A stretch of DNA of 27,477 nucleotides from Macrostomum lignano (lineage: Eukaryota). Below, piece after piece: positions 9,501-27,477 of this stretch. Position 1 is the stretch's first letter, and each line of letters begins with the position of its first letter. The notes under the pieces are model-generated. The model worked only from the letters and a program-made list of their open reading frames with translations. It was not told where the DNA came from and did not search any database. Where the stretch lies: contig NIVC01002403.1 of the NCBI GenBank assembly GCA_002269645.1, positions 1 to 27,477 of the forward strand, given 5' to 3'. Both the position numbers and the translations under genes were made by a program.

Positions 9501-12500
9501 TCCATTTGCCAAACAAAAATGAATACGGGTAAGCCACGCATGCTCAAAAGTACACCGCCTGTGCGACCCCAACCGTTCACGCAGGGCGCAGCTGCTCGGA
9601 CTACGCCAAGCCGCACCCGGACTGCCTGAAAATCATCGAATCACGCCGGAGCGGCCGACCGAGCGTCAGCAATCCGAACACGCCAAGTGAGAGCCGCCGG
9701 GAATCCCTTCTCCTTGCCGCTGCGTTGGAGAGCTGTCCTCTGTCCAAAGTAGATTGACCTTCGTCTTGGTATCTTCCTCCGCTTTAGGGTTTAGGGATTT
9801 ACCTCGAAGTTTGAGATTTACCTCCAGATTTAGGATTACCCTGTAATTTATGGATTTCCCTCCAAGTTTGAGATTTCCCTAAAGTTTGAGATTTCCCTCC
9901 AAGTTTGGAATTTTCCACCCCAAGTCTGGCATTTCCCTCTAAGGTTGGGGTTTCCCCCAAATTAAGGAAATTCCCTCAAAAGTTGGGATTTCCCTCAAAT
10001 TATGGGAATTACCTATAAGGTTGGGATTTCCCTCAAATTTAGGGAATTCTCTTCAAGGCTGGGATTTCCCTCCAAATTGAATAATGTGCCCCGCTTTTGG
10101 ATTCCCTTTTGTTTTTTTGGATTTTCTTCTATTATTTATTATCTTCGGCCTTCAATATATTCTTCTACGAAATTTATGTTCGTTTTTTAGCTCGTAAAGT
10201 ATCCCAACTTTGCAACCCCCTTCTTTTCTTGGTTCTTAATAATTCTTCAAGATCTTCTACAATCATTTTTGTGCCTATCTATTTGTCATAAATGCGTTAG
10301 TGAAAAACCAGGCTTCTATCACCGTTGCAGGAGGAAATCGTACGAGCAGCGATTTTGAAGAAGACGAATCAAAATCGACAGATTTCGACATTCCAGTAGT
10401 AAGTTCGGGTGTCCTAACAAGCTTAATTTACTTTACCTACTAAACACAGACAGACCCATATTGTTTGAGAGTGTACTTTTCAGCATATCTTTCTTTACGC
10501 ACTACTCGAAATAGCAGATGGCAGGACAGGAAAAGCAGCGAAAGTCGAAAGCGGCTGCTGAGCCCGAGAATTCGTCGAATCAGGTCGTTTATCGGTTGCA
10601 GCAATTGAGTTTCTTTGAGTTTCTGCTACTCTTTTTCCACGCGGAGATGCTTTGTGTGACGATTTCCTTGCATTCTTGCATCCCACAGAATTTACTTCCC
10701 TGTCGTTTTGATGGCTTTTATATTCCCTTTTTCAAATTTTTATAGTCACGCATACGAAAATTGCTTCAATTTGCATGCATTTCTACTAACAGTAGATTAA
10801 AAGAGTGCATACAAAAAATTACGTAATAATACAGAATACTAGAGTGGCTGGCCGCAGCAGGTCGCCCGTTGTAGCCCTGGTGGGCGGTCGCAGGGCGATC
10901 AGTCTGAATGTGCTGCCGCCTGGCGAATCCTCGGTGCAAGTCTTTGATCCGGGTGAGCCGTTCTACATGGTGTGAAGGAAAAGTTTAAGTGGCTTCGGTT
11001 ATGGGTTAGAAGAAAAATATATTTTGTCAATGTAAGTTCAGACGGGTGGAGAGACTGGGTAATTTACAGATGTAAAATAAGAGTGTGCTGCAGGAAGACA
11101 ATCAACTGGGTCAGTGAGAGTGAAGTCAGTGAGATTGACAGGTGCAGAGAGAGTGAGAGACTGACAGGTGCAGAGACAGTGAGAGACTGACAGGTGCAGA
11201 GACAGTGAGAGACTGACAGGTGCAGAGACAGTGAGAGACTGACAGGTGCAGAGACAGTGAGAGACTGATAGGGTGCAGAGACAGTGAGAGACTGACAGGT
11301 GCAGAGACAGTGAGAGACTGACAGGTGCAGAGACAGTGAGAGACTGACAGGTGCAGAGACAGTGAGAGACTGACAGGTGCAGAGACAGTGAGAGACTGAC
11401 AGGTGCAGAGACAGTGAGAGACTGACAGGTGCAGAGACAGTGAGAGACTGACAGGTGCAGAGACAGTGAGAGACTGACAGGTGCAGAGACAGTGAGAGAC
11501 TGACAGGTGCAGAGACAGTGAGAGACTGACAGGTGCAGAGACAGTGAGAGACTGACAGGTGCAGAGACAGTGAGAGACTGATAGGGTGCCCAAACTTCAC
11601 ACGGATCTCCAGAGACCGAGAAGAGCCGCTCCCTGAAGGTGCCAATCGTGCGGGACAAGCGGAAGCGCTCTCGCTCACAGTCGCCAGCGGTCTCGCCGAC
11701 CGCCTCAATTGAGAGTCTGGGCAGCGATGATGAAGCTGCTCGTCTGGCAGCTGGCAGTGTCGCCGGGGAAGCCAATAAATCTTCCGCGGTACTGCTTCCG
11801 CTGCCGCTGTTGCTGCTGCTTTTTCAACTCGCTGCTCATCCATAATCTTTTCACCTTGGCTGCGCCATGCGACAATTTAATACACCTGAGCTGATAACAG
11901 CTGACAGCGTTAGGTTAATCCCGCATTTATCTACAGCTAATTTTCCCCATATTTAGTAAGCTAAGCAGCTCTCTGTAGGCAGTGATAAGAAAACTAAACC
12001 AGAGTTTGTGAAAGCTATACTACTGCAGCATTACTCTTGGGCGCACAGTTTCCTTAAAGCTTGAAACTAATCATCTTTTCTAAGTTTGAGGCCATAACCA
12101 TATTACTTTCCTAATTTATCGATTTCCAAAATCTCTAATAATACAGAAGACTTAACAGCAAGAGTGACGTGCGTGCAAATTAACTGGTAAAGCTTAACTT
12201 GCAAGATGTGCCCAGCTAATTTTTCTCACATTTTCCGTGTGAATTTCACAATTTTAATCCATATCGATCGATAACAAATAGCCGTGAACTCACTCCAATT
12301 AATTTTGATGCACAAAAATGATGCAGATAATGTTATATTCTTAGTAACAAATTAGGAGGTAAGAAAGAAGTAAAATATATACTCGAATTAAATGTACATT
12401 TTGGCACTTGTAAAACCATTTGAAGTCTGAATTTACTAAAAATCGGTTAACAAATCTGATTGGCTGGTCGGGTTGAACTGTTTCTACTCGTATTTTTAGA

Positions 12501-15500
12501 AACGCTGTAGGACGACCCCCATTGAATATCGTCTGCCCGCTTCATTCACGCGACCGGCCTCGGCCAATAAAATTTTTGTGCAATTATTATCACTTAAAGA
12601 TAAGAGCTTTGCATTGTACTCGTACTTAAGACTACGATTAGTATATTTTTGTTTTATTCACCCCTACCGTCATAGAGAGCCGAGGCACCGCCGATGAGGA
12701 AATCTCTCGCCGCCGTACCTGAAGCTGCTACTGCGACGACAAAGAATTCTGCCGCAATGACGCCACCGGCGCCTTCGCAGCCGGCCGCAGCAGCGAGTGT
12801 CGGCGGCGGCGGTGGCAACGAGTCGGACTCGGACTGGAGCAACTCGCAGAGCGCGTCGGCAGCGGCCCCCGAGACTGGCGGCAAGTCGCTAGGCGCCAAG
12901 ATCAATCTCAAACTCGAGCTGGAGAAGCGAATGGCTGGCACAGCGGCCGCGGCCGGCTCAGTCGGATCGGCCAAGAACAATATAGCCGACGACGTCGAGG
13001 ATATCGTTGAAATTGGCGACGCCGAGGACGACGACGATGACAATACGGTGGCGTCGGAATTCCCGCCGACAACGGCGCCGACACCGAGATCAGTTGGCAA
13101 TGCGGCCACTCCCAGGGACGGTGTGAGTGGTTTGAATTGCCTGGGTATGCTTTTAACGAAATTAATAAGGACGTTTAGACCCTGTGGGCAGGGAGTCAAG
13201 TGGGGGGTTTGAAATGGGTGTGTGTCTATGGGCAGGGAGTGAGGTGGGTGGGTTAGAAATGGGTGCGTGTCTAGGGGCAGGGAGTGAGGTGGGTGGGTTA
13301 GAAATGGGTGCGTGTCTAGGGGCAGGGAGTGAGGTGGGTGGGTTGGGTAGAAATGGGTGCGTGTCTAGGGGCAGGGAGTGACGTGGGTGGGTTAGAAATG
13401 GGTGCGTGTCTAGGGGCAGGGAGTGACGTGGGTGGGTTAGAAATGGGTGCGTGTCTAGGGGCAGGGAGTGACGTGGGTGGGTTAGAAATGGGTGCGTGTC
13501 TAGGGGCAGGGAGTGAGGTCGGTGGGTTAGAAATGGGTGCGTGTCTAGGGGCAGGGAGGGACGTGGGTGGGTTAGAAATGGGTGCGTGTCTAGGGGCAGG
13601 GAGTGAGGTCGGTGGGTTAGAAATGGGTGCGTGTCTAGGGGCAGGGAGTGACGTGGGTGGGTTAGAAATGGGTGCGTGTCTATGGGCAGGGAGTGACGTG
13701 GGTGGGTTAGAAATGGGTGCGTGTCTATGGGCAGGGAGTGGGGTGGGTAAGGGTAGAAATGGCAGCGTGTCTAGGGGCAGCGAGTGAGGTGGGAACGTAG
13801 AATGCTGTATTAAATTCCTATAAATAGAATTTATTCTAACCTAAACATAAACTGCAGTTTCAGCGGCAAGATTCGGACTGGGAGGCCTCGGAAATTTCAG
13901 AGGCGCCGCCACCGCAGCCAAAGCTAAAGAGGGTATGCGAATGGCCATACTTGCCAACTATTTACAGAGTTCCAAAACAAGCTAATGCTTCACTTGTCTT
14001 ACCTATCAAATCAGGAGTCCACAGAGCAAGTCACCGCTGCAAAAGCAGACGATGAGGAGTCAGACTGGGACGAGTCTGTCGCTGTGTCGGCCGCAGCAAA
14101 AGGCCCTGACGAAGTCAAGGTAGAGTAAGAGAAAGCCATACCGTACACCTCTGTCAGCAGCATCAAGCTTCCATGTATCTTCCACTTTTCCCAGGCTCAA
14201 CCAGCGTCTGCAAAGCTGTCAGCGGCACCGGAAGACGAATCCGACTGGGACAACTCCATGACGGAGGCGCCGAGCATTGCAGCTGCCGCCGCGGTGCCGC
14301 AGCCGTCCAATTCTAAGCCACTGCCTGCCACTGTCAATCTTGGAGAGTCGGCCAACTCCGTTGCTAGGGATGAGGTAATTTTTTCTACGTTTGTCTGTAC
14401 GTAAAGTTTATTTTATTTGCTTAAAGCGAAAATTTTGTAGCACAACTCCGATTTCTGTACGTTTCTGTACTTTTGGAAATCAGCTGTACATTCAGAAATT
14501 TAGATTAGCTTTTCGAAACGTAGTTCTATTTTCTGAACGTAGCTTGACCTTTTGGAAGGTAGCTTGACCTTTTAGAAGGTAGCTTGACCTTTTGGAAGGT
14601 AGCTTGACCTTTTAGAAGGTAGCTTGACCTTTTGGAAGGTAGCTTGACTTTTTGGAAGATAGCTTGACCTTTTGAAGGACATTTTAGAACAAATGTAACA
14701 ACTGTCAGATAGTAGTTTGTTTACTCGGTGAGGCAGCGCTGGATTCTGCCGCTGTACTTATAACTAAGTGACTAGCTGATTGACTATTGAAATATTGACT
14801 GTACATCCAGTGTACCACCACCCCGATTTCGTGCCCCGTGCGCCCCGCCACCCCAATGCGTTAATAATTATATATTGAGCATCGTTTGCGTTAGCATCGT
14901 TTATGATTAATATATCGAAACTGAGACATCGTTCATTTTACCAAATCATCGTGCTACTCAGTTGAACTCTTAGTTAAACGACACGACACTCGAAACATTA
15001 CTGAACTTCCAGAAATATGCTTGACTTTTATATCCAATCTAAGTTATCAGATGCTATCGAAAGTTATAAGCTAGTTCCAATAACTGATTACCCTTGCAGA
15101 TCAGCGAATGGGACTCAGCAACCGAGGACGTGCCCAGCAGCGCGGCCACGGAAGCCCCCTCTCCAAGAAAACAGCAGCAGGAGCAGCCGCCCGACTCAGC
15201 ACGCAATCAAGGAAGCCTGCAGCCCATTGCGGAGGAGGCAGCAGTGGTGGCCGCCGCGATCGCTGCTGATCTGGTTAGAGCGCCAACTATTTTTAATTGC
15301 CGCAAAAAACCTAAACGCATTTCTAATAAGTTAACTAACGGTCCGTTTAAACTTTGAAAACCTCACTAGAACCAGCCTCCGGCAGCAGCCGTTTCCGTCG
15401 ATGTCGCTAAAAAAGCAGACGGTCTGGAATTCTGGGACTCGGAGGCCTCGCTAGCGGCGTCTGACGGGCCGCCGTCGAACCGGTCGGAGCCGTCAGCGGC

Positions 15501-18500
15501 CAGCGGCGTCGAGAAGCCGCTAGCAGCAGCGGCCAAGGACAAGTTGGAAACGCAGGCTCAGGGGGACACGGACACCGACGAGGACATCGACTTCGCGCGG
15601 GACGGCGGGGGCAACGTCACTGTGAGTGCAGCTGGGTAAAGGCTTCTGTATTGCAGTTTGTAGTGGTCTCAGTACGAGAAGTGTTCTGAGGAGTGCTCTA
15701 GCTTGTGCATGGATGTTCGTGCACGGTGCAACTCACACATCCATGAAAGGCGAGGGCGAATCCCCAAGGCACAGAGAGAGCACATGCTTGATGATTAGAC
15801 ATAGCGAGCTACTAATTCCAAGTAGTATTATTACTATGTAGTATTTCAATCTTAGTTTTAGAAATAGACTTGAAAATGGCTCTTTAGGTTCAAAAACGTC
15901 TGTAGCCATGGTAACAACATTAAACAAGATTAATTGTTTCAAAGTTGACGGTTTAACACGGGTGAACGCAGTTCGCATTGCTATCTGATATTCTGAACCA
16001 TGCATGCACTTATCCAAATTGAAAACTTCAGATCAAATTCGCTGGCAGGAACGAAACGACCGAAGATTATGGAGTGCAGGAAATCGGGTGGGTTCAGCTG
16101 CCTGAGTTGTGCATCCTGGTTTCTATGAAAGCGCATAGTCACCCATCTGTGCGAGCGTTACTTTAAACAGGGAAATCATGCCGCAAAACTGTTCAAATTT
16201 TAATTTATAGGACATCAGCTTCACCTCAAGAAGCTGGCGAAAAACTCAATGCTGATGATGAGGAATCTCCCAAACGGTCCATTGAAGAGTTCCCAGCTGC
16301 TGCTGCTGATGCTGCCGCTTCAGCGACCGGGACGCTGTGAGATCTTCATCGGCTTTTTGAAACTCTCCATGAAGTCACCCTGAAGTTATTAATGAAATCA
16401 GCCTGCAACTCTCCATGAAGTCACCCTGAAGTTATTAATGAAGCCACCCTGAAACTCCTATATTAACTAGCCACAAAATCACCCCGAAATTTCTCATAGC
16501 AACAAAAAAATTCCTGACGCTACTCTCCTTCACTGCAATCTCTTCCAGAAGCAGAAAGCCAAGCAGCCCTAGAGCACCGTCGCCGAAGCCGATGACGTCA
16601 TCAGTCGCGGTCGCAACTTCTGCCTGCCCCAGCCCGGTCCGGGAAGACCCCGAGGCGCTCGCCCGCCTGCAGGCGGAGCTGGCCACTGCAGTCGACAACC
16701 TCGCCGAGAGTCGCGCCGAGTCGGCCCGCCTGTCTGAGGAGCTCGAACTCGCGACCAACAAGCTGTCGGAGGCTCGACGGCTCCAGGCAGACGCGGAGGC
16801 CGAGCTGGCGACGGCTCGGAGGCGTCTCGAAGCCGAGCAGGCCGAGTCCGCACGCCTTGCCGAGCGCCTGCGCGCCGACGCGGCCAGCGCCGAAGAATCG
16901 GCGCGAGTCGACCTTCGCCGAGAGCGCGAGGTCAGCGCTGAAGCGTCGCTGGCGCTTGAGGCGGCGCGGTCTGAGGTAGCTGAGCTGAAGCGCAAACTGG
17001 AGCTGGAGCGGGAGGAGGGCGAGCGGTGAGCGCCGATTGGCTGATTGAACTTTCAATGAGTACAAGCTACCCTGAAGCTCTCGTGAAGTCATCCTGAAGC
17101 TCTCCTGAAGTCACCCTGAAGCTCTCCTGAAGTCACCCTGAAGCTCTCCTGAAGTCACCCTGAAGCTCTCCTGAAGTCACCCTGAAGCTCTCCTGAAGTC
17201 ACCCTGAAGCTCTCCTGAAGTCACCCTGAAGCTCTCCTGAAGTCACCCTGAAGCTCTCCTGAAGTCACCCTGAAGCTCTCCTGAAGTCACCCTGAAGCTC
17301 TCCTGAAGTCACCCTGAAGCTCTCCTGAAGTCACCCTGAAGCTCTCCTGAAGTCACCCTGAAGCTCTCCTGAAGTCACCCTGAAGCTCTCCTGAAGTCAC
17401 CCTGAAGCTCTCCTGAAGTCACCCTGAAGCTCTCCTGAAGTCACCCTGAAGCTCCCCTGAAGTCCTCTCGGAGCCCTGTAAACCTAAGAAGCTCAAATAG
17501 CACAATGGAATTTCGCAAACTTTGCAGAATCAAAGCCGAGATGTCAATCAGAGCCTCTGCCGTCGCTGAAGCCAACGGCGATGCGGCATCGCCGGCTTCG
17601 GCCGCGGCGGCATCCGAGGCGCTGGCGGACCTGCGCGAGCGCCTGGCGGAGACCCGCGCCGAGTTGGCGACCGCGCGAGCCGCCCAAGTTGAGACGTCGG
17701 CGGCCGCTGAGGCGGCCACCGGAGCGGCCCGCGCCAACGGGGAGCGAGCCGGGCGCGCCGAATCGGCGCGGCGCATCGCGGCGCAGCTGACGGAGGCGCT
17801 GGCGGAGAGCGCGGAGGTTGGAGAGTCGGCGCCGGCGCTAAGAATTCGAATTCGAAAACTGCTGGGGCTGGTGAGGCTGACAGGCTGGCTGAGATGCTGG
17901 GGTTGATGGGGCTTGTTGAAGATGCTGGGATTGGTGCGGCTTGTTGAAGATGCAGGGATTGGTGGGGCTTGTTGAAGATGCTGGGATTGGCTTGTTAAAG
18001 ATGCTGGGATTGATGGGGCTTGTTAAAGATGCTGGGATTGATGGGGCTTGTTAAAGATGGGATTGATGGGGCTTGTTGAAGATGCTGGGATTGATTGGGC
18101 TTGTTAAAGATGCTGGGATTGATGGGGCTTGTTAAAGATGCTGGGATTGATGGGGCTTGTTAAAGATGCTGGGATTGATGGGGCTTGTTAAAGATGCTGG
18201 GATTGATGGGGCTTGTTAAAGATGCTGGGATTGATGATGAGGCTGACTGATATACTGGAAATTTTATACAAGAGGAAAAGTTAACTTAAATTTTAGCCCG
18301 ATGTAGATTTTGATATCCAAGAAGCCTCGAGACAGCAGCAGCAGCACCGCTCTTCCCCAGTCGAAGTTCTGGTCTCGACCAGTCAGAACTCGGCGCCCTC
18401 TCCAGCCGCAGCCACTGAGCGCACCGGCCTGACGCTCGAGTTTAGAAGCAACGGGTTCGACAGCGCCGATGGACCCGAGGCCGTCACGTTCGAGTCGGTT

Positions 18501-20904
18501 AGAATGGTGAGAATTACCAGATGTGGACACCTTCCTCAGCTGCATGGAAATTTATCGCTCAGCTACACGGAAGCCCACTCAGCTACACCGAAGCCCCACT
18601 CAGCTACACCGAAGCCCCACTCAGCTACACCGAAGCCCCACTCAGCTACACCGAAGCCCCACTCAGCTACACCGAAGCCCCACTCAGCTACACCGAAGCC
18701 CCACTCAGCTACACCGAAGCCCCACTCAGCTACACCGAAGCCCCACTCAGCTACACCGAAGCCCCACTCAGCTACACTGAGCACCCTATATCACTCATCC
18801 AGCTCTCTAAAAAAATCCAGGGGCGTCGCCACCAGGGGGGGGGCATGTCCCCCCCCCAGAAAAATCTATAGGAGGGGACATGTCAATGCTTTGTCCCCCC
18901 CACCTAACCTTGTGACCCGTTAAGGAAATCAATAATTTCACTTCAGGGCGACAAAAAATAGCGCCTGTGGATCGAAAATGGTGCCTGCGGTGCAAAAATG
19001 AGTGCCTGCTGCGCTAAAATGAGTGCCTGCTGCGCTAAAATGAGTGCCTGCGGATCGAAAATGGGTGCCTGCGGTGCTAAAGTGAGTGCCTGCGGTGCAA
19101 AAATGAGTGCCTGCGGTGCTAAAGTGATTGCCTGCGGTGCAAAAATGGGTGCCTGCGGTGCTAAAATGAGTGCCTGCTGCGCTAAAATGAGTGCCCGTGG
19201 TGCTAAAATGAGTGCCTGCGGTGCAAAAATGAGTGCCTGTGGTGCAAAAATGAGTGCCTGTGGTGCAAAAATGAGTGCCTGTGGTGCTGAAATGAGTGCT
19301 GACAACACCACTTCTGAAAATACTGTACATGTAAAATCTTGGCTTTGTGTGCTGGGGGGGGGGGCCCAGCATAAAATTCATGGCAACGGCAACGCCCCTG
19401 GAAAAAAATTGTTTCCGCCTCCCCAGATGGACGCCGAGCAGCTTCGGCAGGCCTGCTTGCAGCTCAGCTCGACCTGCGAGCACCTCAAGCAGAGCCACGA
19501 TCAGGAGCGCCGGCTGCGCCGCAAGCTCACCGACGAGCTGCAGCGGGTCAGCAACGCGGAGGCGCACACCGCGGCAGCGCTCAGTCTGGAAAAGGAGCGC
19601 GCCAGAGCTGTCGCCTCGTCTCGAGCCTTCTTGACTGACGCCCAGCTGACGGGGTACATCGGTGGCGAGCAGTCCAGACTGCCGCAGCCGCCTCCGCAGC
19701 AGCAGCCCCAGTTGCCTCATCAGCAGCAGCAACAGCAGCCTCACATCCAGCAGGCCTCCGAGCAGCTCCAGACACTGGCTAGACCCCATCGGGGCTGGCC
19801 GCCAGTGCTGGACTGTCAGGCGTGGGGTGGAAGGTCCGTTGGCCACGGACACGAAAGCTGGAATTCCGGCCCCTCTGCTGGGGTTGACCCTGGTGGACCT
19901 GGTGGCAGGCTCACCGACATGCCCTCTGCACACTCACGCGGCGACGCGGTGGTGCAAGGCCCCTGTCCTATGGTGAGCGGGGCATTGACGGCTGGCTGTG
20001 CCATGTTGCAGTCAGACCGTTCCCGTAGGCCCATTGACCAGGTGACCCAGCGGGGCCGGCATCAACAACAACAACAACAACAACAACAGCAGCAACAGCA
20101 GCTGGACACGTTCCTTCTTGAGAAACTGCGCGCCGAATTAAATCGCAGCATCTCTAAACATCTTGAGTCAGGTGAGTCATAACAATTTGTCATTTCATCT
20201 TCTGTGGAACTTCAAACAGGCCGCCTACCCCATAAAACCGACACCCCAAATCTTCAAACAGGCCGCCACCCATAAAACCGACACCCCAAATCTTCAAACA
20301 GGCCGCCACCCATAAAACCGACACCCCAAATCTTCAAACAGGCCGCCACCCATAAAACCGACACCCCAAATCTTCAAACAGGCGCCACCCATAAAACCGA
20401 CACCCCAAATCTTCAAACAGGCCGCCTACCCCATAAAACCGACACCCCAAATCTTCAAACAGGCCGCCTACCCCATAAAACCGACACCCCAAATCTTCAA
20501 ACAGGCCGCCTAGCCCTTAAAACCGACACCCCAAAACTTCAAACAGGCCGCCTACCCCATAAAACCGACACCCGAAAACTTCAAACAGGCCGCCTAGCCC
20601 TTAAAACCGACACCCCAAAACTTCAAACAGGCCGTCTTACCCATTAAACCAACAACATATCAGAACTTCAAACAGGCCGCCTACCCCATAAAACCAGCAC
20701 CCCAAAACTCAGCTCAAATTCTCACCTGCGCTCCAATCCTAACCCGCCGCCCATAAATCCCTGAACTCAGAGGACACCGCCAGACGCAATCTGATCTCGA
20801 GTCGAGCCAAATCAACAACTCGATTGTCGGAGTCGCCTGGAGTCACAGCCGGCGAGAGTGACTTCTCCTACCTGACATACCTGAAGAGAAAGTACCTAGT
20901 TTAA
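6540..20904 (+). CDS. ANKRD26: ANKRD26-family ankyrin-repeat/coiled-coil protein, 21 predicted exons, about 1,465-1,475 aa
   Basis: Phase-consistent GT-AG exon chain: 6540-6739, 7170-7359, 7837-8038, 9585-9686, 10331-10398, 10515(or 10518)-10583, 10835-10952, 11613-11788, 12676-13122, 13858-13932, 14015-14119, 14195-14374, 15100-15273, 15370-15621, 16032-16087, 16211-16336, 16549-17025, 17501(or 17528)-17816, 18297-18506, 19427-20171, 20771-20904 (TAA). The N-terminus YNIKEKSLDKIYRAAWNG..R|TALHLACANG..DKENRTPLYRAVQ..GRTALMLAC..GRSCSDYA matches the ANKRD26/POTE ankyrin region. Exons 17, 18 and 20 are coiled coil. The C-terminus KLRAELNRSISKHLES...YLTYLKRKYLV* parallels the ANKRD26 end. Low-complexity middle exons, especially 7 and 8, are less certain. 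Confidence 0.8.
7376..7771. repeat. 26-bp minisatellite (CAGCACCCTGTTCCCTC[T/A]ACCAGCCC) x about 15, ANKRD26 intron 2
   Basis: Direct tandem periodicity. Confidence 0.95.
8299..9433. repeat. 24-bp minisatellite (AGATTGACAGGTGAAGAGTCAGT[A/G]) x about 47, intron 3
   Basis: Direct periodicity, with an interspersed variant AGATTGGCAGGTAAATAAGCAGTA. Confidence 0.95.
9790..10110. repeat. Degenerate ~19-bp tandem repeat (TTTGAGATTTCCCTCCAAG-like), intron 4
   Basis: Recurring (g/a)gatttccctc(c/a)aa(g/a)tt at about 19-nt spacing. Confidence 0.75.
11120..11590. repeat. 26-bp minisatellite (GACTGACAGGTGCAGAGACAGTGAGA) x about 17, intron 7
   Basis: Direct periodicity; shares its core with the intron-3 24-mer. 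Confidence 0.95.
13190..13800. repeat. 45-bp G-rich minisatellite (ATGGGTGCGTGTCTAGGGGCAGGGAGTGACGTGGGTGGGTTAGAA) x about 13, intron 9
   Basis: Direct periodicity; it translates as the repeating MGACLGAGSDVGGLE pseudo-ORF. Confidence 0.95.
14539..14677. repeat. 20-bp minisatellite (GTAGCTTGACCTTTT[G/A]GAAG) x about 7, intron 12
   Basis: Direct periodicity with alternating G/A variants. Confidence 0.9.
17069..17468. repeat. 22-bp minisatellite (CTGAAGCTCTCCTGAAGTCACC) x about 18, intron 17
   Basis: Near-perfect array. The unit is itself a diverged 11-bp dimer. Confidence 0.95.
17895..18240. repeat. 28-bp minisatellite (GATGCTGGGATTGATGGGGCTTGTTAAA) x about 12, intron 18
   Basis: Direct periodicity. 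Confidence 0.9.
18556..18780. repeat. 21-bp minisatellite (CACTCAGCTACACCGAAGCCC) x about 10, intron 19
   Basis: Near-perfect tandem array. Confidence 0.95.
18817..19401. mobile_element. hAT-like non-autonomous element carrying an internal 21-bp minisatellite
   Basis: TIR CCAGGGGCGTCGCC at 18817 and GGCAACGCCCCTGG ending at 19401 (13/14). 8-bp TSD AAAAAAAT at 18809-18816 and 19402-19409. Confidence 0.8.
18975..19310. repeat. 21-bp minisatellite (AAAATGAGTGCCTGCGGTGC[A/T]) x about 16 inside the hAT element
   Basis: Direct periodicity; it produces the spurious KMSACGA N-terminal extension of ORF 18998-20182. Confidence 0.95.
20211..20710. repeat. 40-42-bp minisatellite (TTCAAACAGGCCGCC[T]ACCC[C]ATAAAACCGACACCCCAAATC) x about 12, intron 20
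   Basis: Direct periodicity, degenerating towards the 3' end. Confidence 0.95.
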
Positions 20905-21409
20905 TACTTGCCTTTCGGTTGGATGTTCATGCTCATTTAAACAAATATTATGAGCTCATAAATTTCGGATGCCAGTTTTACTATCGCAATTAGGAGCGTA
21001 TTAACACGCGGTTTCTTATATTCTAACATTCTAGATTTTTTTCTTTTTACCTTCCGTCGAACAGTCTTGTTTCTCTGTCTATCTCATTTTTTTCTTAGAA
21101 TTTCACTTTTCTATTTGTTTATTTCACGTGGCCTGGATTGCATTGGTAGCAACCTTTTGTATTTTTAGTCTAAAAAAATACGAGTATATTTCCAGCTGGC
21201 CTTCTGGACTCCAAACATCTTGAGCAGCTTTTTGTACTATTATGTCATTTATACTTTTTTGCTTGTCATTTTTTAGAAATGTTTAAATGCCTCCATTCGC
21301 ATGGTTCTGCTCACCGTCAATATACCTAATTAGAACCTGAGCTGCATCTTTTTACATTATTAAAATTATTAGACGCTTCTTGGAAAACAGCCTTTTTTCT
21401 TTAAGTTGA

Positions 21410-21415
21410 AATAAA
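21410..21415 (+). terminator. Candidate polyadenylation signal for the ANKRD26-like gene
   Basis: AATAAA about 500 nt after the stop, following a T-rich 3' UTR-like stretch. Confidence 0.4.
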
Positions 21416-21534
21416 ATTCAGAGGAACGTATCACATATTTAAACTTGCTTTGACCTTCTCCGTCCAGCATCCGTCAATACATTTTATTTTTATTATTTCT
21501 ATTTACGATAAGTATACTAAAATGCCAAAGTATA

Positions 21535-21575
21535 AGTAGTAGTAATAGTAGTAGTAGTAGTAGTAGTAGTAGTAA

Positions 21576-21611
<36 letters not shown>

Positions 21612-21612
21612 C

Positions 21613-21685
<73 letters not shown>

Positions 21686-21757
21686 ATAGTAGTAGTAGTA
21701 GTAGTAGTAGTAGTAGAGTAGTAGTAGTAGTAGGAGTAGTAGTAGTAGTAGTAGTAG

Positions 21758-21829
<72 letters not shown>
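21535..21829. repeat. (TAG)n / (CTA)n trinucleotide microsatellite, about 295 bp
   Basis: Long GTA/TAG run with a few interruptions. Confidence 0.98.
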
Positions 21830-21831
<2 letters not shown>

Positions 21832-22296
21832 TGTGGTAGTGCTGACGACTGAATGCTTGAGAAACTGTCCATAAGTGTCCATAGTCACATGGGGTCATAC
21901 CTGTTGAAGGTCCAGAAGCTCCGCCTGGGTGAAGGCCAGTGACCAACGAAGTCAGAGTTGATGCAGACACATGTGGTCGACGTGCTGATGGAGGCTTTGG
22001 AGGCTTTGCAAGGCTGAACTGATGCGCAGTGCTGATTGGCGCCCAGGGGTGTACTGAATGCACTAGCGCAATTATGAAAAAAATCCGACCTTCTGGCAGA
22101 ATCGTCGAATATCTCGACTTTCCAGAGGACTGTTGACAATTGACTCTTATTTGAGAAAGTGCGAAACAAAAAGTTAGTCTTTTTTCTTGAATTTTGTGTA
22201 CCTGAGTTGCTACGTTCCACACGTACTACGAGTAATAGCAGAGGATTATGAGTTACAGTTTGAATACCGAAACTCTAGCTGTTAGAGTATATATTA

Positions 22297-22302
22297 TTTA
22301 TT
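22297..22302 (-). terminator. Candidate polyadenylation signal for the HD-domain gene
   Basis: TTTATT on the plus strand about 60 nt beyond the stop at 22363. Confidence 0.45.
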
Positions 22303-22362
22303 GACTCGAACACGTTGCACAAAAAACAAGTTAAACCAACGCGGTGCCTCCATATTCCCCTA

Positions 22363-23021
22363 TCAAGCTGGCGACTTGGAAGCCAGGTAATCCATGCAGA
22401 GCTGTTTGAACCGTCCTAGCTCGACTGTGTAGTCCACGCTCGGGTCCTTGCCAGCCTCGTCCCAGGTGCGCATCTCCAGATAGGCGCAGTGATCTGGCAG
22501 GCTCTCGAAGTGGTCGGCCTCCGCGGTGCTCATGGCGCCTCCCTGGTGCTCCAGCGTGGCCTTGCTCGCCTCCGACAGCTGCTCCCGATATCCGGGCCGC
22601 TTAGCAACCAGGTAACGCTTCGCCTGAACATGATTCAGCACGAAGGCGGTAATTTCCGGCGGGAACTGCAGCAACTCCAGATAGCGAGCTCCCAGAATGT
22701 CGTGATCCACCGTGCCGTAGTCAACGCCGTCGGTAACCATGCGAGGCACCTGGGGATCCAAGCCGCTCAGGTGATGCCCGATGTCGTGCAGCAGGGCGCA
22801 AGGACGATGTGGCTCGGCTGGTTGAGACCTTCGGCAATGAGGGCGCACTGCACTGCGTGCTGGCACTTGGAGATGTCCTCGCCGAGGTAGTTCTCGCTGC
22901 CGTACCTCTCCAGCAGGTCGAACACCTCGTCAACGCGGGCTTGAAGACTCATCTGAGCAGCTGGAATCGATCGAGGTGGCAGCTGGTAGCCCAGCTTGTC
23001 TATTGTCGAGGTTGCTTGCAT
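22363..23021 (-). CDS. phnZ: Intronless HD-domain diiron oxygenase of the PhnZ/TmpB (1-hydroxyphosphonate C-P cleaving) type, with an apparent 1-nt deletion at about 22797
   Basis: Joining ORFs 22767-23021 and 22363-22866 gives ENYLGEDISKCQHAVQCALIAE..IVLA[A]LLHDIGH..DHDILGARYL..NHVQAKRYL..LSEASKATLEHQGG.M...EA..F...RTWDEAGKDP. This is the PhnZ-family motif order, with the Tyr, His, HD, His, His and Asp metal ligands present. Start is ATG 23021 or 22952; stop is TGA at 22363-22365. Confidence 0.85.
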
Positions 23022-25673
23022 GATGAGGCAGTTTGATTGTTTTTTGTCAATTTATAAGCTACGAATATATAACGCTAGCAATTCTGTCCCACATTTTATA
23101 GGCTGAACACTGCAGCGCTGCACCTGTTGGGTTCTCGCGCTCTACATATGCATGTAGAGTATAGTGTGCTGTGTACACAATCTGTATATTGCAGTATAGC
23201 TGCCCACCGAGAGAACTGCGTGAGTCAGACTTTACCGCAGCACTGGTGGCACACAGCAATTTTTAGCTGTCCCTATCTCTTGAGTGTTTTCTTCTTTTTT
23301 CGATCGCATTTGTCTATGGTAAAACCCCTATTATAAGAATGTTTGTAAACTCCGTTGAAATAACGCAACAAATTGTATTTTAAGTGTTGACGCTCTTCTT
23401 ACGCGTACTGAATTTTCTTCCGCCCTAATTTAAGGAGATGTACGCTTGTATAATTACTGCATGAATGTGGCATTTTCTTGTTCTTTTTTGAATCAAGTAC
23501 ATGTAGTATATTAACTAGAGCGTTATGGACGTTCAAACATACAAACCTTAGAGATTTAGTGTATTTAGATTGTAATAAAATTAATTGGAATGTATGTAGG
23601 TACTCGATCTTACATAGTCTTAAGCTAAAGCTTGCTGGCTTAAAAATTGATATAGCTTTTTAAAGACTAGATCAACAACATGAAAAATTTCAAATGATAT
23701 TGCTAAACATTGTTGTCTGCACTATTATCAATATGACAGCCGGTATAGGAGTACATGTAGCTACAAATTTGCTTTTCGATGAAACTATACCTACAATAGT
23801 GGCTTAAGAGTACCTGGGTGCAACAATTTTACTACAAATATAGTGGATTCAAGAAAGACAAGACAAAACTTCACTTGTGAACATTTGCAACTCTTCAACA
23901 TTTGAACATTACATGTATATGAAATAAAAAGAAAACGATATGAAAATGAAACGTTCACTACACAGCTATATAAAATACAATAGAGTAACATGTTGTGGAT
24001 GCTAAATTAAGAAATGGTAATCTTTGCACCGCCCCAGATCGAATGCAATCGCATTGATTTTGTGATGAAAAAAGATTTTTTCCTATCTCCACAGTGTATT
24101 TTTTCCACGAAAATGGCCTCCTAAACAGTTACTTTGAGTCTTTGAGTTTGTACCTACTGTTGTACTTGTGCACATCATGTACTGTATGCTGCCTTGCATG
24201 CTAAAACGCGTGTGCTGCGTGGTCTGATTTCGTATGTACATGTACACATGTAAATGTAAATCATTTGTATTGTATGGTACATGTAATCTTTCATCCCAAT
24301 CCCATTCGTTTTAACTGCATGATACGAACTACCATGAAATTATCAATATAATTAAGTGTCTACTTTAGACGAAAATTATTTTTTGTCGCTTGCCCACGGA
24401 AAGTATCATACATGTATTGCACCACGTACACGTTAATAAGAACCAACCAAACCTGTACAAATAATATGCAATATATAGCACAACTGCAAAAAATAGTTGC
24501 AGATTCAAGTCTTAGTAACTATTTTTATATTTTCAAGCCATTAATAAGGATTCAAGTTGCAAACTGTGTTTAACTAAACTCAAAGAGTGGTACTATAAGT
24601 TCAAACGTAAAGGTTATGATTGTTTAATTATGATCGGCAGGCAGATCGATCGAACTACTAGCTATTAATGCTCAAGCTTAGCCGATATTTTAACAACCTG
24701 AACTATTACAACGGTGCTAGACGTGTCTTGTTGACAGTTTAAAATATTTTTACCCAATTTTTAGGATTAAAAGTCTCTGCGAATAATATGCATCTACGCA
24801 CTTATTATGGTAAATAATATTGCTATTTATTCATCTCTCTTAGTTCGGAAATATAATCCTATATCTAAAGCTGAGTGGACCGGCTGGGTTTAACACATAT
24901 CTCCTCCTAGACATGCCAACACATAAGATATAAGTTTTAAGTTGTTATTCCTATGCAGAGGGTGGGCCTATTGACTGTAACAGAAACAGATTATTGTTCA
25001 GATAAATATTCCAAATAAATTGAATAAGAATACATCTATTGCTGAACTATTTAATGTTATACATTCTTGTTTGTTTGGAATTGGTAAGATGAAAATGTTG
25101 TCAACTGTTTTATAGCTTTTTTAGGTCTTAAAAACTTAAAATACTAAGAATATAATTTATCTACAAGAGGTAGATTTAAAAAGATTTATTTAATTTTCTG
25201 TATTACTATTCAATAATATTTCAGTCATAGTAAATTATGCCTACAAAGCTATGGCTATTTCATACGGTAAACTCACTCCATCTTTAATGATAAGTTTATT
25301 TGATAAGTTTTAATATATGTGTTTATTATAATAATTTTATTGGCTATTCTAATTATAAAACTTACTTAACTTTATTTGTTAAGCCACAGTTTCCTTGTGC
25401 TAAAATATTCAATTATTTATTAGATATTTTGACTATGTTATGCTGCAAAATTATATTGGATCTAGCAGTAAATAAGCTACTTATGGATACTAGTTAATTT
25501 TTAGCAAAATGTCTGACATGATAGAGATTTACATCATAAATTGAACTTTGCCTTGAATTTCAGCTCACTCTTCAAAGTGGCTTGAACTCATCTAACCAGT
25601 AGTAGTGCCCTCCCCCAGCAGTCCCCGCCCACCCTGACGCAATAGCCCAGCTAGTGACCCCCAGCTATTCGGC

Positions 25674-26387
25674 ATGCAGCGCCTTAGCGCGGCCAGCTTG
25701 TACGACTCTGACCTGGGCATCGGCCTGGGCACCCCGATGGACACGGCCTCCATCTGCTCGTCAGTCACCTCCGACTCCGGCGTCAGCGTTGGTCCCGGCG
25801 CATCTGGCCAGATCCCCGGCCTGCGCCGGATGCAGTTCCCCAGGCCTGTGCGCGTCAGCCAGGCTCCGCCGCTGCCACCGCCGACATTGACTTCGACGAC
25901 GACACCACCGCCGACGCAGCAGCAGCAGCAGCAGTGCCAGCCTGTAGGCGGCCTCGCTCGTCCCAGAACTCTGCAACACTTGCAGCTGCCACAGCAGCAG
26001 CAGCAAAATCAACAGGCGCGACATATGCTGATGGCGAGGCCGAATTCTTCATCTCCAGTTTCGCGTCTGCAGCAGCATCAGCTGTTGTCGCCAAGCACTT
26101 CCTCTGTTTCCTCGCCTCAATCCAGCATCGCTTCCGGTAGGTCGACGCCTCAGTACGCGGTGCCAGACGCTTTGCAGCAGCAGCAGCGGCAGCAAAAGAT
26201 ACTCCAACTGCAGAAGCGGTCTCTGCCGCCCCCGCCGACTCCGCCGCCACCGCCGCCGCCACCTGCGTACAGCGCGAGTCACACCCTGCTGACGTCCAGG
26301 ACGATGCCAGCTGCTGCTGCTGCCGCATCATCGGCCTCGCCTGCGACCGCGATAGCGGTCGCCTGTCGCGGTCAGCCAGCGGGCTTG
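25674..26387 (+). CDS. Coding exon (probably the first) of an unidentified gene, disordered Gln/Pro/Ser-rich region
   Basis: 238 GC-rich codons from ATG 25674 to a phase-0 donor TTG|GTGAGT at 26387. Codon style matches the other exons. No recognisable domain. A possible next exon starts at 27417 (CGCAG|CTC, open to the window end). Confidence 0.65.
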
Positions 26388-26514
26388 GTGAGTTCTGCAA
26401 CCAAGCACTTTCATTGCGGTTTAGGTTTGAATTTTCAAAGAAAAATGCTTTATGATAATTAAATATGAATTTGGTTTTGTTCATCTCTGAGAATAGAGGG
26501 GAAAAAGGAACAAA

Positions 26515-27058
<544 letters not shown>

Positions 27059-27477
27059 AGTATGAAATCATTGAGATAATTAGACCCAGTAAACTGCTCA
27101 CTTAGCAATCAGTAAACAGCCCTTGAACTGTTTCGCTAGTTGAGCAGAAGGAATGCTTGGAATGCGATAAAGAATTATTTCTAGCATATCAGATTTTAAG
27201 CCAGCTCAAGCTTTTAAACTTTAGTTTCATTGGTCATTGCGGAAGATAGGCACAACGGATATTAATTTTTTTAGTCTTAACTTGGCGTCGAAACTGCTAT
27301 GGAAATTCTTCAACTCAGCCTTCAGACTCGTACCTCTGATCATTCTGGTTCATTATCTCATTGCATTGAAGTCTCATATTTATGTGCTTTCTGCATGGCC
27401 TGCTCCATACGCGCAGCTCACACGAACTGTATTACTGAGTCTCGCTGGTCTTCGCTTCTCAACCCAGCCTGTACCTT

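Follow-up and report, generated by a model that had tools for sequence, protein, structure and literature searches.

The breakdown of phosphonates is regarded as a microbial trait, and to our knowledge C–P mineralisation of hydroxy-aminoethylphosphonates is at present attributed to microbes and fungi only. Two bacterial HD-domain enzymes are the closest described systems for the gene considered here. PhnZ from uncultured marine bacterium HF130_AEPn_1 (4MLM, 4MLN, 4N71) is an (R)-2-amino-1-hydroxyethylphosphonate oxygenase, and TmpB from Leisingera caerulea (6NPA) is an (R)-1-hydroxy-2-trimethylaminoethylphosphonate oxygenase. The same family of HD oxygenases, which comprises 4,781 representative clusters, mostly metagenomic, also includes PhoF of the fungus Fonsecaea multimorphosa, a fused PhnY-PhnZ enzyme, and HD-PhyH fusions of eukaryotic microbes. 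In animals, the only HD-domain diiron oxygenase that we know to be established is the mixed-valent enzyme MIOX (myo-inositol oxygenase), which cleaves a C–C bond. The YxxE mechanism and the six-ligand motif of the PhnZ/TmpB enzymes have been described, with the substrate-gating loop represented by Y24/E27 in PhnZ and Y30/E33 in TmpB (PMC8177086).

A gene of this family in the flatworm Macrostomum lignano illustrates how a sequence of bacterial appearance may belong to a long animal history. With fair confidence, the locus can be read as a copy of an ancient animal PhnZ/TmpB-family gene, Mlig025485, that has lost its introns and whose frame is broken by a probable long-read consensus error.

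The Macrostomum locus

The window, that is, the whole stretch of DNA analysed (27,477 nt), is contig NIVC01002403.1 of the M. lignano assembly Mlig_3_7 (GCA_002269645.1), a redundant contig of 27.5 kb. On its minus strand lies a copy of the M. lignano gene family Mlig025485, a single exon predicted to encode a 219-residue HD-domain mixed-valent diiron oxygenase of the PhnZ/TmpB family (Table 1). The first-pass annotation had described this gene as lacking introns, rich in host-like GC codons, followed at about 60 nt by AATAAA and set among multi-exon animal genes, and these descriptions hold. The gene has no intron and is colinear with the 219-residue protein; the signal is present; and the neighbours are LIM and ankyrin genes. 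The coding sequence has a GC content of 0.61 and a GC3 of 0.755, as against a GC of 0.38-0.42 in the flanks and a GC3 of 0.72 in the adjacent LIM exon (exon 1, delimited by ORF conservation with no annotated model). The TATAAA upstream may be a promoter element, and its use would make Met24 a possible true start, for a protein of 196 residues.

Table 1. Positions in the window of the HD oxygenase gene, its catalytic residues, its reading frames and its putative signals
Feature	Position	Strand	Remark
HD oxygenase gene	22363-23021	minus	659 nt, single exon
Start codon ATG	23021-23019	minus	
Stop codon TGA	22365-22363	minus	
CDS part 1, codons 1-74 (Met1 to Leu74)	22800..23021	minus	same as L007 (Mlig025485g3) throughout part 1
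Alternative start Met24	22950-22952	minus	CDS part 1
Tyr45 of YxxE loop	22887-22889	minus	CDS part 1
Glu48 of YxxE loop	22878-22880	minus	CDS part 1
His55, first metal ligand	22857-22859	minus	CDS part 1
Frameshift site, GC remnant of codon 75 (GGC, Gly)	22798..22799	minus	alignment to intact copies
CDS part 2, other frame, codons 76-219	22366..22797	minus	
His79-Asp80	22783-22788	minus	CDS part 2
His107	22702-22704	minus	CDS part 2
His131	22630-22632	minus	CDS part 2
Asp188	22459-22461	minus	CDS part 2
ORF of 84 aa, one frame	22767-23021	minus	
ORF of 167 aa, second frame	22363-22866	minus	
Annotated truncated product of 125 aa, Met95 to stop	22363..22740	minus	contig annotation
AATAAA poly(A) signal	22302-22297	minus	60 nt past stop; kept in paralog L001
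TATAAA	23051..23056	minus	30-35 nt 5' of first ATG; kept in L001

The rest of the window offers little further context. A Pfam scan of ten selected non-repeat ORFs of at least 90 residues, other than the HD gene, returned one weak sub-threshold match and nothing else, and none of the ten contains a 2OG-oxygenase domain; Rfam and tRNA scans of the window gave no match. Gene calls on positions 12363-27477 of the contig consist of the truncated HD product only. The earlier statement that neither a PhnY nor a TmpA gene accompanies the HD gene in the window is in agreement with both the ORFs scanned and these gene calls. Likewise, no linked Fe/2OG hydroxylase, either a PhyH-type PhnY or a BBOX-like TmpA, occurs within 10 kb of the gene, whether at the paralog loci or at those of Pecten, Glandiceps, Paramuricea and Palaemon.

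Family membership, motifs and fold

Assignment of the protein to the PhnZ/TmpB family, as first proposed, is supported by motifs, profile scores, sequence matches to known structures and the fold of a model. TIGR03276, the model for phosphonate degradation HD-domain oxygenases, is the best-scoring curated model (162 bits, E 1e-47; 162.1 bits for the intact paralog P0121), and matches to PDB sequences include PhnZ (4e-31) and TmpB (3e-27). All six metal ligands (H55, H79-D80, H107, H131 and D188) are encoded, together with H83 and K135; over 72 homologs, H55, H79, D80, H83, H107, H131 and K135 do not vary, and conservation reaches 90% or more at Y45, E48 and D188. The segment Y45-L-G-E48 aligns with DYIGE of PhnZ and EYLGE of TmpB. 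In an AlphaFold model of a paralog (P0001, 96% identical; pLDDT 93.3, pTM 0.90), Foldseek detects the same fold in PhnZ (TM 0.90 to 4N71/4MLN, rmsd 2.1-2.2 Å) and in TmpB (TM 0.80-0.84 to 6NPA), with the next matches at TM 0.3 and E 0.04. MIOX is a remote structural match to the flatworm model (TM 0.42-0.49, E 0.8) and, unlike the flatworm protein, has no YxxE loop.

These similarities are accompanied by consistent differences from each of the described systems. The flatworm protein and PhnZ are of similar size and have in common the H...HD...H...H...D ligands, the YxxE loop, AKRYL and QGG, but the animal protein is only 32-34% identical to PhnZ and its loop after HDxGH is 5-6 residues longer; moreover, the animal gene differs from phnZ in having no adjacent PhnY gene, in its eukaryotic setting and animal intron history, and in that its activity is a prediction. 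TmpB is 36% identical to the flatworm protein and has IIVGALLHDIGH and a FPxxIT segment in common with it, but no TmpA gene lies upstream of the flatworm gene, and the score on the TmpB equivalog model NF049941 is 133 bits against a cut-off of 300. The model for the hydroxymethylphosphonate dioxygenase PhnZ1, NF052439, is missed as well (97 bits, cut-off 300), and the curated trusted cut-off of TIGR03276 (214.6 bits) is missed by all nine animal sequences tested (162-202 bits), the eight others scoring, with Cafeteria, 177-202 bits. Some eukaryotic HD fusions, such as the chytrid protein P0228, rank high on the animal profile. PhoF and the HD-PhyH fusions are, however, bifunctional proteins of 430-480 residues, whereas the animal proteins stand alone, have 185-227 residues and contain no PhyH domain.

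The bacterial sequences nearest the animal clade are TIGR03276 "Phn-HD" proteins of Bacteroidota, Bryobacter and Planctomycetota. Their genes are clustered with a TIGR03364 FAD oxidoreductase, a PhnX-like HAD hydrolase and DUF5690, and, as in animals, have no 2OG hydroxylase neighbour; unlike the animal genes, they are operon genes whose products have no animal loop, and the flatworm protein scores below their trusted cut-off. A literature search found no established substrate for these proteins. The loop itself, 22-23 residues with M(V/I)T(D/E)G, is present in 12 of 13 animal sequences and in none of 110 other matches or 80 bacterial loci.

A broken frame in one of three copies

The complete PhnZ-type motif set reported for this locus is only in part borne out, for every residue is encoded, but the set is split over two frames. 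At 659 nt, the gene is indivisible by three and its ORF is incomplete as deposited; the first-pass annotation overlooked the frameshift in this copy. One G of a GG pair is absent at 22799, so that the window reads CTT-GC-GCC where intact copies read CTT-GGC-GCC, and codon 75 is GGC (Gly) in L001 and L007 by alignment and in L003 by sequence and translation. The missing base falls 5' of five of the six metal ligands. The second part of the coding sequence also encodes His83, Lys135 and the animal-specific loop with RMVTDG, and the annotated 125-residue product is without His55, His79 and Asp80.

The assembly contains three syntenic copies of the gene (that in the window, L001 and L007) with the same flanks and 92-98% nucleotide identity. 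The reading frames of L001 and L007 are intact; the L007 coding sequence is that of the window but for the one G, and the L001 protein is 96% identical to that encoded in the window. Contig-specific markers of the window are an 8-bp indel at about 23700 and a 12-nt repeat difference at about 21717. Over 7.07 kb of alignment between the window and L007, none of 33 substitutions falls in the 1,411 coding nt and all 33 fall in the 5,661 non-coding nt, a scarcity in coding DNA with a binomial P of about 6e-4. Of 18 one-base indels, on the other hand, two are in coding DNA, and most are in homopolymer runs of at least two bases. The second coding indel shifts the neighbouring LIM exon relative to both other copies.

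Because substitutions shun coding DNA and one-base homopolymer indels do not, the frameshift is probably an error of the long-read consensus, and this copy not a true pseudogene. The even spread of indels and the broken LIM exon are what leftover PacBio indel errors look like in a small contig with multi-mapping reads at polishing. The assembly was produced from PacBio reads with Canu and polished with Pilon, and 180 Mb of it lies in blocks of at least 95% identity (PMC5730564).

The competing explanation takes the deposited deletion at face value, as a null allele or a decaying redundant copy on a duplicated chromosome of the hidden-polyploid DV1 line, with products limited to fragments of 84 or 125 residues, neither of them able to bind two irons. 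The annotation pipeline likewise called the 125-residue ORF alone, redundant copies of M. lignano genes would be free to decay, and exact look-ups of the 84- and 167-residue ORF products in other public assemblies found no match and no independent contig bearing on the deletion. Nevertheless, a coding sequence with no substitutions, next to non-coding DNA with 33, does not appear to be decaying, and the even distribution of one-base indels, one of which breaks the neighbouring LIM exon, points to sequencing error. A genuine loss of function in this copy is considered unlikely, and a consensus error is the reading followed here.

Substrate and proposed mechanism

By analogy with the bacterial enzymes, a catalytic sequence can be proposed for the intact protein. 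Tyr45 would cap Fe2 before substrate binding; the 1-hydroxyl and phosphonate groups of a 1-hydroxy-2-amino(alkyl)ethylphosphonate would chelate Fe1 while Glu48 bound the amino group; and addition of O2 at Fe2 would lead to oxidative cleavage of the C–P bond, yielding phosphate and glycine or an N-methylated glycine. Chemistry of the OH-AEP or OH-TMAEP type is plausible but cannot be assigned to the protein, since its scores fall short of every curated equivalog threshold and its closest bacterial relatives have no linkage to PhnY or TmpA.

In the gene neighbourhoods of bacterial homologs, scored here from same-strand adjacent ORFs only, TmpA lies ahead of the HD gene at 26 of the 80 loci, and these TmpA-linked homologs have a mean distance of 1.28 to the animal clade, the second largest among ten context classes. 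As the bacterial relatives closest to the animal clade are also without a dedicated hydroxylase, the animal enzyme may need neither PhnY nor TmpA, and it may act directly on natural (R)-HAEP. (R)-HAEP is a natural compound, and lipids containing N-methyl-AEP occur in molluscs (PMC10590968). In marine invertebrates, the enzyme would probably serve to regain phosphate from phosphonates of the diet or of the animal itself.

An unlikely alternative is a substrate for the animal clade other than a 2-amino-1-hydroxyethylphosphonate, such as another alpha-hydroxyphosphonate, a non-phosphonate alpha-hydroxy acid or a diol, in which case the enzyme would not be phosphonate-catabolic in the manner of PhnZ or TmpB. 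No curated threshold is reached, and the animal loop, which follows the HD motif and precedes the third histidine ligand, may lie alongside the active site, a position that is itself predicted. The nearest bacterial relatives adjoin genes among which the role of the HD protein is putative, and C–C bonds are also cleaved by HD-domain oxygenases, for example MIOX and SmaX (PMC12186529). Yet the six ligands and the YxxE loop are complete, residues conserved between PhnZ and TmpB (AKRYL, SxASxxTLxxQGG, RxWDE) are kept, the C–C-cleaving SmaX has lost its second iron site, and all conserved bacterial contexts are phosphonate contexts. Whether marine invertebrates, from cnidarians to tunicates and with this flatworm among them, possess an ancient nuclear gene whose product is a stand-alone C–P bond-cleaving oxygenase is, on this evidence, about evenly poised between acceptance and doubt. 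A literature search found no relevant paper on an animal PhnZ, on its RefSeq name or on phosphonate in Macrostomum.

An animal lineage with ancestral introns

The label "bacterial-type" given to this gene does not stand, as it groups with homologs of marine invertebrates and encodes a loop absent from all bacterial sequences examined. Its closest relatives are from molluscs, crustaceans, a coral and hemichordates, with further homologs in a crinoid and a tunicate; the best matches are animal sequences of 47-52% identity (one gastropod, 49% over 75% of the query), bacterial sequences reaching at most 48%. Exact exon models from Pecten, Glandiceps, Paramuricea and Palaemon have introns at the same exact positions, so that members of Cnidaria, Mollusca, Arthropoda and Hemichordata have both. 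The first is in phase 0, before (I/V)V(L/I)GALLHD, the second in phase 1, after YY(D/E), and the two are 226 nt apart. The Macrostomum gene has neither, and its link to the animal clade is one of sequence. In neighbour-joining (NJ) trees, 192 of 200 bootstraps give Macrostomum a sister group made up of eukaryotes only, while strict animal monophyly is weak (93 of 200 and 41 of 200). The phylogenetic check that had been called for favours an animal clade and vertical inheritance but leaves strict monophyly of the animals weakly supported. With its common introns and animal-only loop, this is the vertically inherited animal clade that the first-pass annotation had named as evidence against its proposal, although the annotation had in mind a clade with no phosphonate activity.

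As judged from these comparisons, the gene belongs to an ancient animal lineage that includes cnidarians, molluscs, crustaceans, hemichordates, a crinoid, a tunicate and flatworms, and that had two introns as early as the cnidarian-bilaterian ancestor, both of them lost in Macrostomum. A diverged ortholog is present in another Macrostomum species (dS about 1.4), with a dN/dS of 0.07 between the species and 0.23 between paralogs, and the gene models of M. lignano are transcript-based (PMC5730564). Together, the data indicate that a PhnZ/TmpB-like gene has been resident in animals since before the cnidarian-bilaterian split and has been kept under purifying selection in marine invertebrates.

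How the introns were lost is a separate issue. The joint absence of both ancestral introns would be expected of a retrocopy whose intron-bearing parent persists elsewhere in the genome. No poly(A) tract follows the AATAAA, however; all three copies are syntenic and intronless, a 90%-identity cluster contains their three products alone, and no further M. lignano homolog is found among the best matches, all of which make a surviving parent improbable. The intron loss itself is real; retroposition is a candidate cause, but no poly(A) remnant attests to it.

Recent horizontal transfer of a bacterial phnZ or tmpB into the flatworm, raised as a possibility in the first-pass annotation, would account for an intronless gene in a mostly bacterial family. 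It is very improbable, since the nearest relatives are animal genes with conserved introns in four phyla, the sister group is purely eukaryotic in most bootstraps, the animal-only loop is present, the codon composition is host-like, LIM and ankyrin genes flank the gene at three syntenic loci with contigs as long as 1.57 Mb, and the ortholog in the other Macrostomum species has diverged; on synteny, composition, introns of the animal homologs and the loop it is rejected. Bacterial contamination or a chimeric join, for which there is the bacterial look of the family and nothing more, is rejected on the same four grounds and merits almost no credence, as the assembly holds three copies of gene and flanks with 92-98% nucleotide identity, with a eukaryotic AATAAA and M. 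lignano-type tandem repeats on both sides.

Implications

A bacterial-looking intronless gene is, in this case, neither a product of transfer nor of contamination, and the broken frame in contig NIVC01002403.1 is best handled as an assembly defect. On the reading given here, it is an old animal gene that has three copies in M. lignano and did not arrive recently from bacteria, and its product is a predicted iron enzyme related to bacterial enzymes that break C–P bonds. Knock-down is in use in flatworms, and M. lignano would be a practical test system if the prediction is true. Transgenesis is established in the species (PMC5730564). Molluscs, for their part, are known makers of phosphonolipids. 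If the prediction holds, hydroxy-aminoethylphosphonates of the diet or of an animal's own phosphonolipids could be mineralised by the animal itself, and if the enzyme cleaves C–P bonds, animals would have a direct part in the marine phosphonate cycle.

A PhnZ/TmpB Fold and Active Site

Joining the two open reading frame (ORF) pieces of the HD gene gives a protein of 219 residues that matches Pfam HD, the NCBIfam model TIGR03276 ("phosphonate degradation HD-domain oxygenase"), and the PDB chains of PhnZ and TmpB. The intact paralog carries the YxxE loop residues Tyr45 and Glu48, all six metal ligands (His55, His79-Asp80, His107, His131, and Asp188), and also His83 and Lys135; such features mark out PhnZ and TmpB as mixed-valent diiron oxygenases (HD superfamily review, PMC8177086). 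Across a 72-sequence alignment, H55, H79, D80, H83, H107, H131, and K135 are invariant, with Y45, E48, and D188 at least 90% conserved. An AlphaFold model built on this alignment, whose first sequence is the paralog P0001 at 96% identity (pLDDT 93.3, pTM 0.90), has as its sole strong PDB matches PhnZ (TM 0.90, rmsd 2.1-2.2 Å) and TmpB (TM 0.80-0.84), the next match falling to E 0.04 and TM 0.3. The family named by the first-pass annotation is thus borne out.

None of the curated thresholds is reached, the scores being 162 bits against a cut-off of 214.6 for TIGR03276 (Phn-HD), 133 against 300 for the TmpB equivalog, and 97 against 300 for the PhnZ1 equivalog; eight other animal homologs tested also score below the TIGR03276 cut-off (177-202 bits). 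Membership in the PhnZ/TmpB family is therefore solid as regards fold and active site; assignment of a substrate is not. The enzyme family is well known, and animal members have already been labelled by automated annotation; literature searches found no paper on any of them.

An Ancient Clade of Animal Enzymes

The nearest relatives of the protein come from Palaemon, Pecten, Lottia, Pinctada, Patella, Pollicipes, the octocoral Paramuricea, and the acorn worm Glandiceps, mostly at 47-52% identity, and several are named [quoted passage not shown] in RefSeq; the best bacterial genome match has 48% identity. A profile of animal sequences run against 1.84 billion representatives added Halocaridina, Ptychodera, the crinoid Anneissia, Haliotis, and the tunicate Ciona savignyi, whose homolog (P0124, UniRef H2YLI9_CIOSA) ranks third against that profile and is without the M(V/I)TDG loop signature. 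Among the named best matches, most matches being unnamed, there is no homolog from a vertebrate, insect, or nematode.

In other animals the gene bears introns and lies amid ordinary animal genes. Exact GT-AG exon models, fitted in four phyla and reproducing the deposited proteins, share in all four a phase-0 intron directly 5' of (I/V)V(L/I)GALLHD (the Macrostomum codon 71/72 boundary) and a phase-1 intron in the codon following YY(D/E) (Macrostomum codon 148). The two are spaced by exactly 226 nt in scallop and acorn worm, by 139+87 nt in coral, and by 115+111 nt in shrimp. Because these positions are common to four phyla, both introns were already in the cnidarian-bilaterian ancestor. Macrostomum has lost both, perhaps by retroposition, so that its place in the clade has to be judged from sequence. 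The Pecten maximus locus (L002) also holds a tandem duplicate of the HD gene 3 kb downstream (15890-17658), with exon pieces matching in tblastn, and the Palaemon locus (L006) a stray duplicate of the 17 codons that open the third exon, inside an 11.7-kb intron (20694-20744).

Between HDxGH and the third histidine, the animal proteins have a loop of 22 residues (23 in Macrostomum) carrying M(V/I)T(D/E)G, which occurs in 12 of 13 animal sequences and in none of 110 other matches or 80 bacterial genome loci. The 13 animal sequences cluster together in NJ trees, with bootstrap support of 93/200 in one sampling and 41/200 in another, which brings Cafeteria into the group; in 192 of 200 replicates the sister group of Macrostomum contains eukaryotes only. 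GC3 is 0.755 in the HD gene and 0.72 in the neighboring LIM exon, in keeping with the host-like codons described earlier. Measured against L003, a diverged ortholog in a different Macrostomum-like sample, dN/dS is 0.07 at dS ~1.4; between the two paralogs it is 0.23. Gene models of M. lignano are built from transcripts (PMC5730564).

The first-pass annotation had the family right but the origin wrong, and its interpretation is partly supported. It had raised horizontal transfer or a retrocopy as possibilities, to be checked by phylogeny against bacterial, fungal, and invertebrate homologs; the NJ trees do not support transfer, and the animal relatives, the introns shared by four phyla, and the animal-only loop argue against it. 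With the host-like composition and the diverged Macrostomum ortholog added, recent transfer is rejected, as is contamination on the same body of evidence, including the transcript-based models.

A Duplicate with a Probable Assembly Error

The top database match of the 219-residue protein is a Macrostomum lignano protein of 96% identity, and clustering at 90% identity groups three sequences: P0001 (BOX15_Mlig025485g1), P0121 (BOX15_Mlig025485g3), and the truncated 125-residue product annotated on the window contig, which an exact look-up gives as NIVC01002403.1 of assembly GCA_002269645.1. The two intact copies, on contigs of 1.57 Mb (L001) and 395 kb (L007), each consist of one 660-nt exon with a LIM-domain gene on one side and an ankyrin-repeat gene on the other. 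Both align colinearly with the window. The gene is intronless, as described; the poly(A) signal reported about 60 nt downstream was also found. Identity to L001 is ~92-94% over the gene and 5' flank and 86-97% elsewhere, and identity to L007 is 98.4% across 7.1 kb. Starting ~40-45 nt past its poly(A) signal, L001 has ~1.27 kb of extra DNA (10777-12050) without counterpart in the window (compared at 22234-22254), which may be a transposon insertion.

Features of the HD gene and its surroundings in the window
Feature	Position	Strand	Basis or remark
Start codon ATG	23021-23019	-	sequence
Stop codon TGA	22365-22363	-	sequence
AATAAA	22302-22297	-	60 nt past stop
ORF piece 1, 84 aa	22767-23021	-	ORF list; N-terminus MQATST...
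ORF piece 2, 167 aa	22363-22866	-	ORF list; ALLHDIGHH... to stop; frame differs from piece 1
Annotated product, 125 aa, truncated	22363-22740	-	exact look-up; first residue Met95
Remnant of codon 75 (GC)	22799-22798	-	alignment to L001, L007
Met24 position	22950-22952	-	aligns with start of other animals' proteins
TATAAA	23051-23056	-	30-35 nt 5' of Met1
LIM-domain gene exon 1	25674-26440	+	1-nt homopolymer deletion ~26359, one C of C run
(AGT)99 microsatellite	21535-21830		467 nt beyond HD gene's poly(A) signal

The earlier observation of a complete PhnZ-type motif set is partly confirmed: the motifs are there, but a 1-nt frameshift, which had been missed, interrupts the reading frame. The gene (22363-23021) measures 659 nt, which is indivisible by three, and its coding sequence equals that of L007 except for one G, CTT-GC-GCC standing for CTT-GGC-GCC (Leu74-Gly75-Ala76) in L001 and L007. 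As only one of the six metal ligands is encoded ahead of the break, a genuine frameshift would leave fragments of 84 and 125 residues unable to form the diiron site.

Over 7.07 kb the window differs from L007 by 33 substitutions, 18 one-base indels, most of them in homopolymer runs of at least two bases, and nine longer indels. Coding sequence makes up 1,411 nt of this comparison (the HD gene and LIM exon 1, the extent of the latter taken from ORF conservation). It holds none of the 33 substitutions, against ~6.6 expected (binomial probability ~6e-4), and two of the 18 one-base indels, against ~3.6 expected; of these two, the one in the LIM exon puts it out of frame relative to L007 and L001 alike, and the contig annotation calls no LIM gene on the window contig. 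Substitutions filtered by selection alongside unfiltered single-base indels form the pattern of residual long-read indel error, and the frameshift is probably technical in origin. The Mlig_3_7 assembly is a Canu build of PacBio reads with Pilon polishing, and 180 Mb of it lies in duplicated blocks of ≥95% identity, where short reads multi-map (PMC5730564); hidden polyploidy is described in M. lignano (PMC10468722). That the frameshift is genuine, making this copy a null allele, appears rather doubtful; the window copy is a duplicate probably damaged by assembly.

The true start codon may be Met24, giving a protein of 196 residues, as other animals' proteins start at this position and a TATAAA lies close to Met1; on the other hand, the other Macrostomum species shows partial conservation of the 23-residue extension. 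Sixteen tandem arrays with periods of 19-45 nt lie between 168 and 26946, occupying ~6.8 kb (25%) of the window contig, and many long spurious ORFs are translations of them.

Genomic Context and Partner Genes

The reported lack of a PhnY or TmpA partner agrees with a search of 10 selected non-repeat window ORFs of at least 90 residues, which found no 2OG-oxygenase domain; the HD fragment is the sole gene called at 12363-27477. No 2OG-oxygenase gene was found within 10 kb of the HD gene in the paralog loci or in four other animals. Among 80 bacterial genome loci, TmpA (NF049936, 571 bits) directly precedes the HD gene in 26, and a PhyH-type PhnY-like gene adjoins it, up- or downstream, in five. 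About 20, from Bacteroidota, Bryobacter, and Planctomycetota, have instead a TIGR03364 FAD oxidoreductase, a PhnX-like HAD hydrolase, and a DUF5690 membrane protein. Of the context classes, this one, seen also in the metagenomic relatives P0013 and P0017, comes nearest to the animal clade. No PhnY or TmpA neighbors occur in these clusters (loci L014-L018, L020, L022-L024, L027, L030-L032, L035; L009-L011).

Many proteins of eukaryotic microbes, 430-480 residues long, combine an N-terminal PhnZ-like HD domain with a C-terminal PhyH (PhnY-like) domain and resemble fungal PhoF, as described in the HD superfamily review; unlike these fusions, the animal proteins are stand-alone. Examples in the profile matches, one from the chytrid Podochytrium, include P0167, P0181, P0208, P0211, P0222, P0227, P0228, and P0230, and in P0218 the HD domain is fused to a PhnX-like HAD domain instead.

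Possible Substrates and Mechanism

Conservation covers the ligand set and the gating loop, and the rest of the mechanism is drawn by analogy with PhnZ and TmpB (PMC8177086). On this model, the resting enzyme would hold Tyr45 on Fe2; the hydroxyl and phosphonate groups of the substrate would chelate Fe1; and Glu48 would swing in to bind the amino group as Tyr45 departs. O2 on Fe2 would then give a superoxo-diferric species that abstracts the C1 hydrogen, and four-electron oxidation would cleave the C-P bond to phosphate and glycine or N-methylated glycine, restoring the Fe(II)/Fe(III) state.

As (R)-HAEP itself occurs naturally and molluscs contain N-methyl-AEP lipids (PMC10590968), it is plausible that the stand-alone animal enzyme acts directly on pre-hydroxylated phosphonates. 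Use of a different substrate seems unlikely; pointing that way are the missed curated thresholds, the position of the animal loop between the HD motif and the third histidine ligand, where it may border the active site, and the cleavage of C-C bonds by the related HD oxygenases MIOX and SmaX (PMC12186529). The point of interest is not the window copy itself, but the ancient, conserved animal clade to which the gene belongs.
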